Below are positions 13,799-27,882 of a DNA stretch of 64,000 nucleotides, in pieces. A program made the translations under genes and the position numbers. Source of the stretch: Auanema rhodensis (taxonomy: Eukaryota; Animalia; Nematoda); contig OZ059897.1 of the NCBI GenBank assembly GCA_964057225.1, positions 12,338,001-12,402,000 of the forward strand. Reading direction: 5' to 3'. Within the stretch, counting starts at the first letter, position 1. Each line of letters starts with the position of its first letter. The notes under the pieces were generated by a model. The model made no database searches. It had not been told where the DNA came from and saw only the letters and a program-made list of their open reading frames with translations.

Positions 13799-15278
13799 AT
13801 GACTTCATTCATCGACAACAATGATTGTGACAGCTCTATTCATAGTGATTTTGAATTAGTTTCAAGTGATAGTCAGTTGTTTGAAGAAATTTGCCAAATT
13901 AGCACATGTATGTCATGTTTTTCTTTGTTTCAAGTTATTTATTATTTAATAGATGATACATTACATGGATATCCTTCTCAACCCTCACCATTTTGTCCAT
14001 CAATACTGGCCAAAAATCTTTGGAGTGAAAAGTCTGTGTAAGTTTGTTCCAAGTTGAATTTGTTAAAAATTTGTTGGTTTGTAGAGAGGAAGAAAGTACA
14101 GAACCAGTTATTGTAAACAGAGAAAGCTGTAAAACTATACCAAAGCAAAGTATGCCTCTTAACTTAATAGACTTTTTTAAAAAGTATTTTTCTTTAAGTT
14201 GAAGATATCCATTTGAAACAATTGGCTATTTTGAAACAAACTTTAGAAAAAACAGGAGAACAGGTTTTGGAGTTGCTTGAACAGAGAAAAAACGTTTGTT
14301 ATTTGAATCTCTTGATGATTTTGTTATTTTTAATTTGTATATTTTAGAATTTTCAAGCCATCAATGAGTTACAAGAAAAAGTTCTAAGGTTGGAAACAAA
14401 AAATTCAAATCTTAAAAAAGTTTGGTTTAATTTACTAATTCAATATTATCGTTATATTCAGGCATCTGAGCAGAAAGACAGAAGAAAGACTTCAAAACAT
14501 GAAGGTCCTTTAATAAAAGCATCGGAAAAAGATTTAAGTTCAAATGATTCATCAGTAGCGATTTCTAAACGAAGCAGTGTATCAAGTGAAGAAACGAAAC
14601 AATTGAATTTAGAAGCGATTGATGATGTATTAAGGTTATTTCTCAATTTGATTCAATATAGTCTATTTCAGACATATGAAGCTAAAAACTCTTTTTTCAA
14701 TTTTTTCTTATTTATTTTCTTTTTAATTTTAATTGCAGTAAATATTGGTTTACAACTTCATGTGAGTTATAAGTTCATATATATTGAAGTATATTTTTTG
14801 AGTTTAGGCTAATCAAATAGAAACACAAAATGAAAAATTAAGAGCAGATTTGAGTAGAATAACAAATAGAGTATCTAAATTTGAGGCTAATCAAAAAGAA
14901 GTAGGTTAATTATTATAATAAACAACAGAATATTATTTATATTAGGATCTTATTGTTTCGGATTCCCGACGGTCAGCATCTGTTCATAAAAATTTTGATC
15001 GTGATATCCACGAGTGTCAGACATTATCAGAACAAAATGAAAGAATATCATTAGAAAATATACAATTGCATAATCAAGTTAAGTAATTTTTATTTGAACT
15101 TTAATAATCTTCATGTTTCTAAGGTTACCGTACTAGCCACGTTCCTACTCGTGGCCATTCTTTCATATACAGCAAAATTTTTGATTTCATTCATATGCAA
15201 AACCTTGAAATCAATTCAAAATTTGTGATAACTTTTGAATTTATTAGAAGATTCTATACAAACAACGTATTTTCCTAA
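13799..15278 (+). CDS. Hypothetical membrane protein: N-terminal LIR-like motif, coiled coils and two hydrophobic segments (about 10 exons)
   Basis: Exons join in frame through short GT-AG introns: MTSFIDNNDCDSSIHSDFELVSSDSQLFEEICQIST...IEDIHLKQLAILKQTLEKTGEQVLELLEQRKN|NFQAINELQEKVLRLETKNSNLKK...NSFFNFFLFIFFLILIAVNIGLQLH|ANQIETQNEKLRADLSRITNRVSKFEANQKE...ENIQLHNQ|VTVLATFLLVAILSYTAKFFDF...NNVFS*. No family recognised. Confidence 0.75.
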
Positions 15279-15498
15279 CTTTGTTAAACAAAGGGAAAAG
15301 CTGTTAACTGTTTCAGAATTTTCTATATCAGTTATAAATAGTACTTACTATTTTATAATTTATTGTATTTATATTTTTATAATAAATGGAATAATATTTT
15401 TTTTCTTATTAATTCTTTATTTTTCTACAAGGTACAATTCATCTAATATGATATGTATAATTATGTATAAGCAAGATTACTACTTTCTTTTTATTATA

Positions 15499-16454
15499 TC
15501 AGTTCTTGCGTCTGTTTTGGAGTTCAGCTACAACTCCATCCCATAGGGTAATTCTGGCTTGAAGAGATTTGACAGCAGTCTCGATAGCTTCTTCCCATCT
15601 TGGATCACCGTCTGGTCCACATACCTAAAATCAAATATTAGTTTCCGTATTTTCATCAGTATATTACTTCTTCGATAAGTCTAAGAGACATAGGTCCGTG
15701 ATCTTCCCCATCAACTTCAATGTGTCTTTCCAAGTAGAGGATGAATGTATCAAGAGCTCCATCCATTCCCTTATTCATGTCACGGAGAATTCCAGTGAAC
15801 ATAAGAGGAATAAGATCTTCTCTTCCAAAGGTGAAAGCAGAAGCAACAATATGAAGTTTGTTTGTGCGAATGAATTCAAATGTGGCACGAACAAAGTGTT
15901 CAGCGGGCACTGGAGCGTTGGCAGCACGGAAAGCCTACAATTTAGATGACAGTGAGCTTAGTGAAAAAATCTCTTTCATACCTTGCTGATGGCACTGTCG
16001 GAGAAATCTTTGCTCTTGTTAATAGTATTCATAACTTCAAGGAAGCATTTAGTGTTGGATCCAGCTCCTTCCATAGATTCAAGATAGAGCTCCAAGTGAG
16101 AGATGTTACGTCCTCCTACAAAGTCAGATTCTTCTCCTTCAACGATTTCATTGATGAGGCGGCGAGAATCACGATGTCCCTGAGGTACCCATGGAAGGTC
16201 AATGCAAGTGAGCTCACGTTGAAGGTACTGTAAAAAAATTGTTTAAAAGCTCTTGATCATCAGTATAACACTGAAAGCCTTACCTTGAGAAGAGACATGA
16301 AGTCCCAAACAGCGAAGACGTGATTTTGCATGAAATAGCGAAGATCGTCGAGACTTTGGATGGCTTCATAGAGAGCATGCTTGTCAAGTTTCTCTTGGAG
16401 TGGAGCAAGCTTGGCTTGAAGGCGTTCAATTGGCTTGATTTGTTGACCAACCAT
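15499..16454 (-). CDS. DUF3050-family heme-oxygenase-like (candidate di-iron) protein, 269 aa, bacterial-type; exons 16284-16454, 15982-16227, 15668-15934, 15499-15624
   Basis: Three phase-0 GT-AG introns (56, 47, 43 nt). The product carries the DUF3050 signatures [81 protein letters not shown] and ARITLWDG. Confidence 0.92.
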
Positions 16455-16513
16455 TTTGAATAAGTTGAATGAGTAAAGTTAGTGAAGGATTGAAGGTGTT
16501 GTAATTGTCTTAC

Positions 16514-16553
16514 GACTGAATATGTTGGTTAGCCTTCTGAATCTTCTTATATA
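16514..16553 (-). promoter_or_regulatory. Putative TATA box (TATATAAG, 16553-16546) and Inr-like TCAGT (~16517) of the DUF3050 gene
   Basis: Both motifs lie on the gene strand 60-100 nt upstream of the ATG, and there is no TTTCAG trans-splice acceptor between them and the ATG. Confidence 0.5.
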
Positions 16554-16684
16554 GCCATCTTACCTTCATGAAGGTTGAGCCCGTTTCTCCTTTTTGGGCG
16601 GTTCGTTAATATTTTTAATCACGCGTTTCCGGTAGGTAGGAGAATTCTGGGAAGTTCATTAGATACAGTAACGTTTTATCGTAT

Positions 16685-16690
16685 TCTCTC

Positions 16691-16734
<44 letters not shown>
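16685..16734. repeat. (CT)n microsatellite upstream of the DUF3050 gene
   Basis: CT dinucleotide run. Confidence 0.9.
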
Positions 16735-16736
<2 letters not shown>

Positions 16737-18473
16737 TGATGCTCTCAATTCACTCATGATATCTAAGTCTTTTGAAGTTTCAGAGTTTAATATTATTTGA
16801 AGGAAATGACAATTTCAGTGTATAGATAAGATAGCTTAACTATAGGTTTTTTTGTCCGAAAAAAGAAAAAAGAACAGGAAAAATATGAAGAGATTGTTCT
16901 AACATCATCTAAAACCAGCTAATTATTCCAAAAATAGAATCATATCAAATATAATTGTCACCTTTATCATTATGTTATTGTTTTGAATATCTCTTCCCAA
17001 TATAGTGTATCTTACTAAGACCTACATTGATAGAAACATTATCAGAAAAAAAGAATCATGTTCAACTTCCGGTAGTTAACGTCATCAGTTCATCGTTTAA
17101 AGTTCAACGATAATTAGCGCAATGTGATGCTATATTTAGTAGTTCCGATCGAAAAAAGAACAATCTATATCTTACATCTTATATATTTGGATGTTTTCAG
17201 TCTTTTTTTATGTAAATTGACATGATAAATAGAACAATTCAATTTGTTTTTTTTTTAAATTATAAAACAAATAATCATAAAATAAAAATCTAAATATATA
17301 ATATATAATATATAAAATAATTATTTTGTTGTTTATAATACTTTATTTATATTCTTTGTTCAATGATGACGACTATGATGATGATGAACTTTCTTGAAAA
17401 TATCGGAATATAATTAGTTTTATGGAGAAAAAAAAAGAAAGAAAAAACAATAGATTAAACATTGAAATATAATATTATATTCAATTCCTCTTAATATTCT
17501 TTTCCTATTATTGTTTTAATTTCAGTCCTATTTTCTTTGTTTTAATACCCTTTTATATTATTAACTGAAAAATAGTATAAGATTACAAATTATTTGAAAA
17601 TATTGAATACAGTATAATATTATTAAAAATAATTTTAAACCATATTACTTTTCAAGTTCATACTTGTTTTCAACAATATTTCATATATATATATATATAT
17701 GTAATATTTATTATAGAAAGTACTTTATACAAATTAATATTTTAACTGAAATTTATTTGAAAATTTAAAAAAAGCAATTATCTCTGATCAAAATAGAAAA
17801 GACAATAGTGTAATGATTGATCTATAATTCTTGTCTTGTCTTCTTTCTATTAATCATTCTCTTTTTTTTCCTTGTCGATCAAGTTTTAATATTTCATATA
17901 TGCACTTATCGATGAACTTTCATTAACTAATATTGATATTATAACATAGATATATAGATATATAGATATATATTTACAAACTTTATATTTTATACTAAAA
18001 TATACTTAATATACTTATATTATATGAATGCATCTACTTAGTATATGTATTTGTTTATACTCATCGTCACGTACAACCTCATGTTTCTTCTATCAGATTA
18101 AAAATAAATTTTATAAAGGTTTCTTGCTTTATGTCTAATTCAATTAGCTATATACCAGCATAGTAAACCGTCAAGCTTGCTTATGCATCGCCTTATCCAT
18201 GTTCCACTTCCGTTGATATGCGAACGTTCGGTGCACTAAGTACACACATCGAAGTGATTGATCGTTCAAAAAGACTAATGTGCAAAATTAGTTTAAAGTT
18301 TCCAGTTTTAGTAGCATATCATCCTAATTATTGTTCTTTCGTTTCTTTTTTTTGGAAGATTATTCATTTGTTTCTATTGTTTAAATAAATATTAAATTAT
18401 TTTTATTATATTGAGAACAAATCATATTTATATGTTTTCAAGTGAGCAATAATATGATGACAGAAGACAAACG

Positions 18474-21400
18474 TTATTCGTCTTGATTAACCAAGACTGG
18501 AGTAGATGGGAATCTGAAAAATTATAATCTATACTCAGAACATTCATTACAATACCGTACTTATGTCTGATTCCACCCATAGCAACTGATAGTACGATCT
18601 TATCTAATCCAGTTCCAACACTTCTTACACGAGCTTCGCCTTTTCGAGTCGTCTGCAAAATATATAATAACTAATATTTTAACTCAAATAATAGGGAAAT
18701 GTGATTACAACATCTAGAATAAAAAATAGATAATTTCGTGCTATTTACAGAAAGAGAAGAAAGACAATAAAAACATTTTGAAAAAACATGTGTATATTAA
18801 AACTTCATAATCAGGGTTACAATATATTGCTCACCAATAACTTTCGTTCTTGCTGTTCTTCTGTCTAAAGATATTAGAAATATCATAACTTTATGATTAG
18901 AATATACTATTATTCTTTTCAATTATTATATATATTTTCTTTAAAAATTGTTTTGTTATAATGTTGTTGCTTACCTCGTATATCATGAAGCCATTTCCGG
19001 TATCACAATATCGAATTGTGGTCATTGGCCTTAGTCGCTTAGCCTTAGTGGGTGTTGAAGACTAAGAAACGATCCAATTAAATATTTATTGAACATTTTT
19101 TGAATTTGAAAATTTACCTTCGATCCTATCAATTTGAAACGAATATGCCTCAAAGATTCTAGCGTGTCCAACACTTCACATCTAATTCTCGAGTTACAAG
19201 CTATGTAGATTGGCAATCGAGTGCAGCTTTAAAGTAAAAATAGTATTTTTTATTATATATTAATATAAATTTTTATTATTTACCTCGCTAATACAGTAAA
19301 TAATGACACCAAATCTGATGATAAAGTATAAAAGGGACGTAGTTGTTCTGACATCAATGATGGCTTAAATTATAATTATATTCGTCATTTAGAATTATTA
19401 ATGAAAAAAATGAATAAATTATTCATTTGATTTATGAATTACCAACCTTGTCAATTAATTCCCATGTATATACAACTACATTTAATAAATTTGAAGCCAA
19501 ATATGTACAAGTTACAAATACGAGCATTAATGTTGCTGAACGTATGTTCTGCTGAAAAAAGTTTAATCATTATCTTCTATCACTTACAGTAATAGACACA
19601 TGCATATGTTCATCAGAACAACTATTTTTCGATTAATCTTTCAAGGTCATTTGATCATTTTACAAGTAAATTTGATTATTTTCGTTTTTTTAAACTTTTT
19701 TTCAATAAATCCTTTGATAGTCAATGAACATAACATGTCTATTTGCATTATTGAGAATAAATTTTCCACAAAAAATAATTTTTATCTTCAATCTTGAAAA
19801 ATGGAAAAAGCAAAAAAGGTGAAATACAGAACAACATGTTAAGATTTCAAATTTCCATTGCCGCTAAACACAGAGAAAGCAAATGTACTTACCCGATGTT
19901 CTGATGTAGCAAAACGGAATAATTTTGCTCCGTGATGTTGCTCACGTAGACGGCGAATGATTTCAAAATTTAAGTAAAAACACAAAGCAAATGGAATAAA
20001 TATTGTGAATATATTCCGGAACCAATACTGTAAATAGATTTCTTTTAATGAGAGAATAAAATAATATTATTGTTTACCTTATAGAATGTTTTATATGGTT
20101 CCATCTCACTAAATTCTCCTACAGTTGCTGTCCATGTTGTAACTCCTGTACAATTTCCATTTTCAATAACCTTTAGAAAGAAAAAGAAATTTTATTGTTT
20201 AAACAGTTTTAAATTATTTTTTACCTGTACTTCAAAATACATTGGTAGTTTAGCAACTGCCGCAAATAATACAGCAGCAACAGATATGAAACATCGATGT
20301 CGTCGAGCAAACTGATGTCGGATTTTTGCTATTGTTACATACCTGCATAACAACAATTTTCTATTATACTTACTTAAAAAAACGAAAAATAAAAGTTTTA
20401 ACAAAAACTTTTTTTCATGTTTTCCTAATGAAGTGAAGTTTTTTAAGAGTTTCGTTATACATAGAACGATAATGAGAAGACTTTGAACAATTCATAATTT
20501 CCTTGAAAAATAACTCAAAGGGCAAATAGCCATAAATGAGTTCGTAGATCATTTCAAACTGTACTTTAAAATTTAAGAAACATAGTGATGTTTCATGTAT
20601 GTATGTTGTTAATAATTTAAGCTTCCAAAAAAAAATGAGGAGGCATAAGTTCAGCTTGGAAAACAAAACTTCCTCATTTCTTTTGTTAAATTTGGACACT
20701 TGTATGGATTTTTAATAATTCTTTTGATATTTGCTTTATACATTAATAATTCTTTCTGTTGTATATACCTTTCAAAAGCAGCTGCTACAATCAAAAATGC
20801 AGATGTACTGATAAATACATGAGATATCGTAATGGTTGTTCTCATGTATGTCCACCAATTATCAGCAAGAAATTCCGATTCAAAATAATCCATATATAGA
20901 TTAATAGGAAATAAAAGAATATATGATGCTGAAATATCAAGAATCAAGAATTTATGGTTAAATTGATGTAAAAGTAACAAGAGTTTCCTGATTAATTAGA
21001 GACAAACCTGACAAAAAGACATCGGCTATTGAAAGAAAAATTAAGTAGAGAACATGAGATGAACGATGACGCTTGTTCCGAAAAAGAACATAAAATAGAA
21101 AAGAGTTGAAGCAAACTGATGTAAATGCTATCACAGCTCCAATAACGCCGACTAAGATCAATCTGAAAGATATGCTCCATCGTATCGAGTTTGTTTGTTA
21201 TGAAAGTAGAATTGCCACTTCAAGAGAAAAAATAATGAAAAAAAAAATTTTTTTCCTTCAAACGAATTCCTCATTTTCATTCTTGTGGAACGTCAAGATT
21301 CGTTAAGGCTACTTGAAGGTTGAACACAAGTTCAAAAATAATTTGCGGGTCAAGTTTAATCTTTCATCTTCTATACATCGAAGAAATTTAGTAAAAAGAG

Positions 21401-26169: not shown

Positions 26170-26316
26170 TCTGAATAATTAATAATTTTCAAAATGTTAA
26201 AATAAAATGTATAAATAGCAGATGTGAAAATATTCAAACGATAAACTGTTATCATATTAAAAAGGTCGTTATACAACAACGGCATATAATCTATAGAATG
26301 TCACATATACTGTATG

Positions 26317-26325
26317 CGACGTGGC
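26317..26325. promoter_or_regulatory. XBP-1/UPRE-like element (GACGTGGC) in the bidirectional promoter
   Basis: CGACGTGGC (reverse GCCACGTCG) lies near the middle of the 338-nt gap between two divergent ER-lumen folding genes. Confidence 0.55.
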
Positions 26326-26507
26326 TAAACGCTTTTGCTGGAAATGTTGCTCTATTGCTAATCGTTTTGGAGCGTAATTTGAGAAAGCAGCATATACCTA
26401 TGTGGCTTTATGAAACGTGTGCTATTCCCATCCCTGCTTTTACTCTTTTTCCATTTCTTTTTTTCTTTTTTTCAATCGATTTTATTAATTTAATTTTTTT
26501 TCAGGAA

Positions 26508-27882
26508 ATGAGAATATTACACTTTTCTTCGTTACTAGTGTTATTAGCCTTATTAGAATATGTAATATGTGGAAGAGATTTTTACAAAATTCTTGGTGTA
26601 GCTCGGAATGCGAATGCACACCAGATTAAAAAAGCTTATCGTAAATTAGCTAAAGAATTGCATCCTGATAAAAATCCAGACGATCCTGAAGCAAACGAAA
26701 GGTTTCAAGATTTATCGGCTGCTTATGAGGTACTTTTTTTCGACATTTTCAAACTGATGCGTTTTCTGTAGGTTTTGTCGGATAAGGAAAAAAGAGCTAC
26801 ATATGATAGGCATGGAGAAGAAGGTGTTAATAAAATGGGAGGAGGTGGTGGTGGACACGATCCCTTCTCCTCTTTCTTCGGAGACTTCTTCGGAGGCGGA
26901 GGCGAAAGAGATGATCAAATTCCCAAGGTAATTTCGAAATATATTTTTTAATAATTATTTTATCCAGGGAGCTGATGTTGTTGTTGATCTTTTTGTCTCA
27001 TTAGAAGAAGTTTATGTTGGCCACTTTGTCGAAGTTAAACGTAAAAAAGCTGTTTATAAGCAAACTTCTGGAACACGCCAATGTAACTGCAGGTATATTT
27101 TTCTATATATCTTACCAATATTTCTATTTTTATTTTTTAGAACCGAGATGCGAACAGAACAAATGGGTATGGGTCGATTCCAGATGTATCAAGTAAGAAA
27201 ATAGAACAAACATAACAAACTAGTTATTTCTAGGTTAAAGTATGCGATGAATGTCCCAATGTTAAACTTGTGCAAGAAACTAAAGCTCTTGAGGTTTTGT
27301 GTTGTTCAATATGTGTGTGATTTAATGTATTTTTCTCAGGTTGAAGTTGAAGTTGGTGCTGATGATGGCCACGAACAAGTGTTTGTAGGAGAAGGTGAAC
27401 CTCATATCGAAGGTGAACCAGGAGATCTCAAGTTCAAAATTCAAATACAGAAACATCCAAGGTATTTTTTCTTTAAAATTATTTTGCATTGATTTTGATT
27501 TTTTTTAAGATTCGAACGTCGTGGAGACGATTTATACACTAATGTAACAATCTCATTGCAAGATGCTTTGAATGGTTTCACCATGGAAATAGAGCACCTG
27601 GATGGTCATAAGGTTTCACTTGAAAGAGATAAAGTAGGTTAAATTATGAGATTTTGTTTCTAATCGTTTGGTTAGGTCACTTGGCCAGGTGCTCGCCTGA
27701 GAAAGAAGGATGAGGGAATGCCTTCACTTAGTGATAATAACAAGAGAGGAATTTTATATATCACATTTGATGTAGCTTTCCCTCGTACTGAATTAACAAC
27801 AGAACAGAAGAAGATAATAGAAGAATTATTGCAACAAGGTGATGTGAAACCTAAAGTATATAATGGTCTTCAAGGGTATTAG
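26508..27882 (+). CDS. dnj-20: ER DnaJ co-chaperone DNAJB11/ERdj3
   Basis: TTTCAG acceptor just before the ATG; signal peptide; J domain [10 protein letters not shown]...[10 protein letters not shown]; G/F region; RQCNCR...[12 protein letters not shown]; [13 protein letters not shown]; ends KVYNGLQGY*. Confidence 0.95.

Follow-up and report, generated by a model that had tools for sequence, protein, structure and literature searches.

Within a 64,000-nt stretch of the genome of the nematode Auanema rhodensis (contig OZ059897.1, positions 12,338,001 to 12,402,000; the whole stretch is called the window in the following), the minus strand carries a gene of four exons at 15499-16454. Its coding sequence (CDS) of 810 nt, spliced by script, runs from an ATG at 16454 to a TGA at 15501-15499 and specifies a product of 269 amino acids that is, judged from its sequence, a member of Pfam family PF11251 (DUF3050, now named HamA_HO-like). 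An earlier note on this DNA had claimed a 269-aa open reading frame (ORF) with three phase-0 introns of 56, 47 and 43 nt. Scripted splicing reproduced this structure, with GT..AG borders at every intron, and all five motifs quoted in that note were found in the spliced protein (the first at residues 45-57, another at 100-105). The window exons were searched one by one, and each alone matched PF11251, in profile order (Table 1), which confirms both the splice model and the family. The bit scores were 54.7-104.6 for three of the four exons, against a cut-off of 22.2 bits; NCBIfam gave no match for any of the four.

Table 1. The HamA-like gene of A. rhodensis and its putative signals, in window positions.
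Feature	Position	Strand	Description
TATA-like box TATATAAG	16546..16553	-	~99 nt upstream of the ATG; putative core promoter, inferred from sequence
Exon 1	16284..16454	-	residues 1-57, from the first in-frame ATG; H45, counterpart of HamA H40; PF11251 profile positions 1-35, E 1.5e-14
Intron 1	16228..16283	-	56 nt, GT..AG, phase 0; site and phase common to 3 Mesorhabditis genes, 2 Bursaphelenchus species and relative L097
Exon 2	15982..16227	-	residues 58-139; E89/E90 (GEESD), H101 (SHLELY), nematode-specific loop insertion; PF11251 profile positions 36-113, E 4.4e-21
Intron 2	15935..15981	-	47 nt, GT..AG, phase 0; site common to three Mesorhabditis genes
Exon 3	15668..15934	-	residues 140-228; R177/E178 (GRED), H210, D214, H218; PF11251 profile positions 115-203, E 8.2e-30
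Intron 3	15625..15667	-	43 nt, GT..AG, phase 0; site not found in the other nematode genes mapped
Exon 4	15499..15624	-	residues 229-269 and TGA; R252, counterpart of HamA R240; PF11251 profile positions 205-233, E 3.1e-4
AATAAA polyadenylation signal	15490..15495	-	begins 4 nt past the stop codon; inferred from sequence

A (CT)n microsatellite of ~20 units lies at 16697-16735, ~245 nt upstream of the start codon.

For structural comparison we used the orthologue from Diploscapter pachys (WR25_11218), which is 69% identical to the window protein and matched HamA of Burkholderia cenocepacia (Protein Data Bank (PDB) entry 9VWB) over its whole length with an E-value of 1.3e-54; together with the exon matches, this bears out the DUF3050 assignment first made from the motifs. 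The AlphaFold model of this orthologue (71-sequence alignment) had a mean predicted local distance difference test (pLDDT) score of 94.8. In the Foldseek comparison that the earlier note had envisaged, the model aligned to 9VWB with template modelling (TM) scores of 0.82/0.90, followed by CADD, a TenA homologue, UndA and PolF at TM 0.55-0.6. On the strength of this model, the predicted fold of the worm protein is the heme-oxygenase-like helical bundle, as had been proposed.

Across the 71 aligned sequences, the counterparts of HamA E85, R167, E168, H199, D203, H207 and R240 were invariant (E97, R184, E185, H217, D221, H225 and R259 in Diploscapter numbering), and those of H40, E84 and H96 were kept in at least 90% of the sequences. 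The corresponding residues of the window protein are E90, R177, E178, H210, D214, H218 and R252, and H45, E89 and H101 respectively. All HamA iron ligands and carboxylate-binding residues are thus conserved in the alignments, and the window protein has, by sequence, the six-residue E/H/E/H/D/H ligand set typical of heme-oxygenase-like di-iron oxidases (HDOs). Retention of the ligand set had been claimed before and holds. The accompanying claim of a di-iron enzyme needs correction: all six canonical positions are conserved, but a di-iron centre is not established, as the only structure from the family, that of HamA, holds a single iron.

What is known of the family comes from bacteria. mgoB of Pseudomonas syringae encodes a DUF3050 protein, and its disruption merely lowered mangotoxin output (PMC3298696); a 2015 survey modelled DUF3050 on CADD and found six di-iron ligands conserved (PMC4520260); HamA is listed in reviews as a putative N-N-bond enzyme (PMC11705231). 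These papers, and Pfam's new family name, confirm the links to MgoB/PvfA and HamA that the earlier note had drawn. The 2025 structure paper on HamA found one iron and 2-oxoglutarate binding (Kd ~208 uM), and the enzyme was reported to oxygenate carrier-tethered N-hydroxy-valine with a dependence on 2-oxoglutarate; mass spectrometry with inductively coupled plasma (ICP-MS) gave 1.5 Fe per protein, no 360-nm band was seen, and E206 was said to replace the second-site histidine (PMC12522199). The residue next to E206, H207, is invariant across the family in our 71-sequence alignment. These reports make PF11251 a family of O2-using non-heme-iron oxidases, which would hold one or two irons.

To place the worm gene, 5.8 billion proteins were searched twice, the query being first the nearest full-length relative and second a profile built from ten proteins of the nematode clade. 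A nematode group of nine proteins and two transcript-like contigs scored 398-506 bits; it includes proteins of D. pachys, Mesorhabditis belari (two), M. spiculigera, Pristionchus fissidentatus, Aphelenchoides besseyi (M3Y95_00555300), Bursaphelenchus okinawaensis and B. xylophilus. All remaining matches scored ≤ 375 bits and were, where named, bacterial and from Acidobacteriaceae (Granulicella, Terriglobus, Acidicapsa). Proteins of Caenorhabditis, strongylids, ascarids and filariae were absent from the nematode scoring group in this profile search, as were, among the best 120 matches, those of any other eukaryote. Among 185,579 prokaryote species genomes we found at least 596 relatives, in Acidobacteriota, Bacteroidota, Actinomycetota and Pseudomonadota; in Granulicella's family it occurs sporadically, in 4 of 81 genomes sampled.

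A maximum-likelihood tree, the analysis by which the earlier note had hoped to recognize horizontal transfer, was calculated from 74 rows with IQ-TREE under the LG+C20 posterior mean site frequency (PMSF) model and left unrooted. The nematode sequences formed a clade with support of 100/99, sister to an Acidobacteriaceae clade (88/85), and both lay inside a larger group including Bacteroidota. The position of the nematode clade among bacterial sequences, together with the score gap in the profile search, supports a bacterial origin of the gene by horizontal transfer.

One further sequence, P0001 (495 aa; the top-scoring representative, from Joint Genome Institute (JGI) metatranscriptome contigs L095 and L096), was considered as a two-domain eukaryotic relative and rejected: an exact 831-nt direct repeat makes it probably an assembly artefact. 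Its contig looks like a transcript of a marine eukaryote, and it falls elsewhere in the tree, among bacteria.

The gene is not peculiar to A. rhodensis. Orthologues are present in at least nine nematode species from two suborders, including Diploscapter, Mesorhabditis, P. fissidentatus, Bursaphelenchus and Aphelenchoides. Hence, of the initial suggestion that this worm may have acquired the gene, acquisition from bacteria is supported, but the event is old and belongs to more than this one worm. All nematode-clade sequences have in common a loop insertion of 5-7 residues, which the Granulicella, Silvibacterium and Terriglobus proteins that were aligned lack; Acidicapsa has its own longer, different loop at this place.

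Exon structures were mapped by exact threading of the annotated proteins on their loci. Intron 1 (phase 0, after ...FMSLLK) occupies the same alignment column in the window gene, three Mesorhabditis genes and B. okinawaensis. The deposited model of B. xylophilus (P0277, L092:3001-3975) omits nine conserved residues, VWDFMSLLK, and uses an internal GT, since at the conserved site of intron 1 the intron is of the GC-AG type and its true donor reads AAG|GCAAGT. Likewise, in the genomic contig of relative L097 an intron ends with TTTGTAG right before the same ALQ codons. The introns of P. fissidentatus and A. besseyi lie at other sites. Shared intron positions, which had been named as a check on the gene's history, are therefore present: intron 1 is common to Rhabditina and Aphelenchoididae, and intron 2 to Mesorhabditis. 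The shared position of intron 1 dates the transfer before the split of the two suborders. In both Bursaphelenchus species the gene is flanked by INCENP on one side and an EF-hand gene on the other. Lineage-specific duplicates also occur: the two P. fissidentatus copies (L004, L005) are inverted, lie ~10 kb apart and specify one and the same protein, and in M. belari at least three genes were counted, of which two adjoin (L007, L093).

In A. rhodensis the gene is single-copy in an assembly of 181 Mb and 112 contigs, and lies 12.3 Mb inside its contig (C5). Its GC content is ~41-44% vs 16-30% in the flanks, and the GC content at third codon positions (GC3) of the CDS is 0.39, compared with 0.76-0.80 in the nearest bacterial (Acidobacteriaceae) genes. 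DNA sequencing runs from three studies contained 0.93-1.00 of the sampled words of 15400-16600. The gene is an integrated host gene with host features, namely introns, host-like GC3, AT-rich flanks and a large contig around it; these features and the DNA runs of several studies confirm the view, taken at the outset, that it is not bacterial contamination.

Ten kilobases away, on the plus strand (26298-26771), we found a DNAJB11-type J-domain exon (Pfam DnaJ, E 5.5e-23), whose best named matches are from Caenorhabditis and strongylid (clade V) nematodes. The plus-strand ORFs beside the gene had no Pfam match, and the same was true of the ORFs at 20651-21161 (receptor-like in look) and 13799-14812. 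The region 17200-18000, which separates the gene from what comes next upstream, is extremely AT-rich (16-18% GC).

As to expression, four runs guessed to be RNA contained 0.56-0.59 of the 15400-16600 words, where ~0.59 is expected if coding exons alone are present. For words of exon 2-intron 2-exon 3 the share in these runs was 0.76-0.82, with 0.855 expected if the intron is absent. These word shares, an indirect measure, fit a spliced transcript. Two relatives, P0153 and P0002, are intron-less contigs of 1.1-1.2 kb with untranslated ends, and are transcript-like. In every nematode pair, nonsynonymous differences (pN 0.15-0.27) were far fewer than synonymous ones (pS 0.62-0.93), and dN/dS was ~0.14 where calculable. 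By these comparisons the gene is under purifying selection, and it looks functional.

Collectively, we consider it probable that one ancient transfer of a stand-alone bacterial HamA-family gene gave rise to a functional nematode gene that was then inherited vertically. The transfer would have taken place into an ancestor of rhabditid nematodes, before Rhabditina and the aphelenchoid Tylenchina split, and vertical inheritance would have been accompanied by loss in many lineages and duplication in a few. Several observations weigh against this reading or parts of it. Because the tree is unrooted, the nesting of the nematode clade in bacteria is a matter of taxon distribution, and the absence of the gene from other eukaryotes was judged from the best 120 matches. 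A grouping of the nematodes with a Bacteroidota-rich clade was not rejected by the approximately unbiased (AU) test (p 0.234); an Acidobacteriaceae donor is suggested, and a Bacteroidota-related one is compatible with this test. The free gene tree puts Mesorhabditis outside Aphelenchoididae plus the other Rhabditina, unlike the species tree (a species-tree-like arrangement, with Rhabditina held together, was not rejected; AU p 0.296). Parallel gain of intron 1 is possible because its site, AAG|G, is protosplice-like. The evidence for splicing and expression in A. rhodensis consists of indirect word counts, and the predicted structure is that of the 69%-identical Diploscapter orthologue. Finally, the chemistry is extrapolated from a single in vitro report on HamA, and HamA/PvfA was reported to be dispensable for hydroxylamine intermediates (PMC11659414).

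Other histories of the gene fare worse. Bacterial contamination or a mis-assembled bacterial fragment might be suspected of a protein that is 50-54% identical to Acidobacteriaceae proteins and belongs to an otherwise almost wholly bacterial family. Yet the frame is interrupted by three spliceosomal introns, GC3 is 0.39 vs ~0.77 in bacteria, the surrounding DNA is AT-rich and the locus is deep within a contig of > 12 Mb; a TATA-like box and an AATAAA signal are present, the locus occurs in runs of several studies, and in other nematodes intron-bearing orthologues lie in chromosome-scale contigs beside animal genes (INCENP, EF-hand, AdoHcyase), leaving contamination a virtually negligible probability. 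Nor do we favour vertical descent of an ancient eukaryotic gene with near-universal loss and no transfer, which appears very unlikely. This would require very many independent eukaryotic losses, no non-nematode eukaryote scored with the nematode clade (best 120 matches of the 5.8-billion-protein search), and a single bacterial family stands nearer to that clade (50-56% identity, sister at 88/85) than the bacterial phyla stand to one another. The unrooted tree and the age of the gene within nematodes leave some room for such descent, as does the occurrence of the family in at least one marine eukaryote-like transcript (P0001), but the latter was placed in a different, bacterial part of the tree. 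Several independent transfers from bacteria into different nematode lineages would agree with the patchy distribution among nematodes, with the departure of the within-clade gene tree from the species tree, and with the accessory nature of the family in bacteria (the 4 of 81 genomes in one family). We nevertheless regard them as quite unlikely, given that the nematode copies form one clade (100/99) with a common loop insertion that Granulicella, Silvibacterium and Terriglobus lack, that the site and phase of intron 1 are the same in Rhabditina and Aphelenchoididae, and that a species-tree-like arrangement was not rejected.

Two further alternatives concern the product. UniProt's automatic names for the Diploscapter and Mesorhabditis proteins are 'Heme oxygenase', the fold is alike, and HmuO structures were among the weak Foldseek matches, so that the protein might be taken for a true heme-degrading heme oxygenase that fills the gap left by the apparent lack of a canonical one in nematodes. 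We give this only a slim chance: no Pfam family except PF11251 was matched (E up to 1), real heme oxygenases (HmuO) showed 8-9% identity with E > 0.02, the conserved residues are a non-heme-iron ligand set, and the iron in the HamA crystal is bound straight to side chains, without heme. It is equally hard to see the gene as a decaying or silent relic without present function, for which the indirect nature of the expression evidence in this species and the loss of the gene in many nematode lineages could be cited. The frame of 269 codons is unbroken and its splice sites are canonical, all catalytic residues are retained, pN is far below pS, the word shares of the RNA-like runs fit a spliced transcript, and lineage-specific duplicates have been kept in P. 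fissidentatus and Mesorhabditis; a relic is accordingly most improbable.

What the protein acts on was approached through potential partner genes. A six-frame search of the whole genome revealed no AurF-type N-oxygenase (HamC/PvfB; PF11583). Condensation domains of nonribosomal peptide synthetases (NRPSs) were found on contigs C7 and C4 only, and the HamA-like gene is on C5, with no NRPS-like loader of the HamD/PvfC kind beside it. The two NRPS loci (C7:7280001-7281233 and C4:17038780-17045047, one of them in a stop-free frame of 3646 aa) are not linked to the HamA-like gene and may be the counterparts of the nemamide synthetase genes.

On the bacterial side, clustering of the flanking ORFs of 80 loci gave no widely conserved neighbour. 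The Acidobacteriaceae genes have housekeeping or unrelated neighbours by Pfam (ABC ATPase, DUF971, LOG, GatB, GlyQ, DUF882 peptidase, GGDEF-EAL), and therefore the branch nearest the worm provides no substrate clue. An AMP-binding (adenylating) enzyme adjoins or lies near the DUF3050 gene in Actinomycetota only (L020:4300-5940, L034:4281-5981, L083:1347-5348), and may suggest, for this branch of the bacteria alone, a role linked to a carrier. In Bryocella elongata, a SnoaL-like polyketide cyclase is encoded 740 nt downstream of the DUF3050 gene (L012:3889-4302); it recalls HamE/PvfD and was seen at this one locus only. The ham/pvf cluster context to which the earlier note had appealed does not carry over to the worm, whose genome has no AurF/HamC gene and whose nearest bacterial relatives are stand-alone; the worm protein descends from a stand-alone branch of the family.

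The protein would be a soluble, cytosolic non-heme-iron enzyme with one or two Fe, for which E89/E90, H101, E178, H210, D214 and H218 are the candidate ligands. H45, R177 and R252 may bind a carboxylate, either the substrate or a co-substrate (for HamA, 2-oxoglutarate was reported), and O2 would serve to hydroxylate (possibly at N or C) a small metabolite, probably one with an amine group, or to oxidise it in some other way. With no HamC/AurF partner in the genome and the nearest bacterial relatives outside ham/pvf clusters, the most likely substrate is a free metabolite and not NRPS-tethered valine. A bolder proposal is that free-living nematodes use the enzyme for N-O chemistry otherwise unknown in animals, whether by producing their own N-hydroxylated or diazeniumdiolate-like metabolite or by oxidising and inactivating bacterial signals of the valdiazen/PVF type met in feeding. 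We think this unlikely; were it true, no animal enzyme of the heme-oxygenase-like oxidase superfamily would have had a defined role before this one.

Full-text literature searches for DUF3050, PF11251 and related terms returned no paper on the nematode genes. Public databases already contain the nematode proteins, and automatic naming has labelled some of them, misleadingly, 'Heme oxygenase'. The window gene is a new, well-supported member of the HamA family and of the ancient bacterial genes in nematodes. To our knowledge, all study of heme-oxygenase-like non-heme-iron oxidases has concerned bacterial enzymes of natural-product pathways (N-N bond formation, alkene and p-aminobenzoate (pABA) synthesis). 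An intact copy under selection, long kept in free-living, fungus-feeding and plant-associated nematodes, means that an animal has adopted this O2-activating scaffold. Since the worm copy is stand-alone like its nearest bacterial relatives, its substrate could explain a large orphan branch of the bacterial family, and the Pristionchus, Bursaphelenchus or Mesorhabditis relatives are tractable worms in which to ask for it. These expectations are tempered by the facts that gene transfer into nematodes is well known, that the orthologues are deposited, and that nothing as yet points to new chemistry.

Among the systems with which the worm gene can be compared, HamA of B. cenocepacia H111 (fragin/valdiazen cluster; 9VWB) shares the Pfam family and the fold, and the counterparts of its H40, E84/E85, H96, R167/E168, H199, D203, H207 and R240 are all retained in the worm protein. 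In contrast, HamA acts on valine tethered to a carrier, and its operon also encodes the N-oxygenase HamC and the NRPS-like HamD, whereas the worm gene is stand-alone and intron-bearing, has the nematode-specific loop insertion, and resides in a genome without an AurF/HamC homologue. MgoB/PvfA of the Pseudomonas mgo/pvf clusters, the HamA counterpart, is likewise a DUF3050 protein of similar length (PMC3298696), likened here by description; it differs in being embedded in a cluster and tied to a bacterial signalling molecule. CADD, UndA, SznF and PolF have the helical-bundle fold and the E/H/E/H/D/H ligand type in common with the worm protein, but at 11-14% identity and TM 0.55-0.6 they belong to another Pfam family, and two-iron occupancy is documented for them but not for the HamA family. 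DtpC of Acinetobacter, an HDO-like desiccation factor (PMC13232832), was considered as an analogue, and no link was drawn. The nearest non-nematode sequences, at 50-56% identity, are the stand-alone DUF3050 proteins of Acidobacteriaceae (Granulicella, Terriglobus, Bryocella, Silvibacterium, Acidicapsa), which have the same length and conserved residues and, like the worm gene, lie outside ham/pvf clusters; their genes have no introns and a GC3 of ~0.77. Closest of all are the nematode orthologues, which at 55-69% identity form one clade with the window protein and share its loop insertion and some of its intron sites, while intron number varies from 1 to 5 and copy number reaches two in P. fissidentatus and at least three in M. 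belari.

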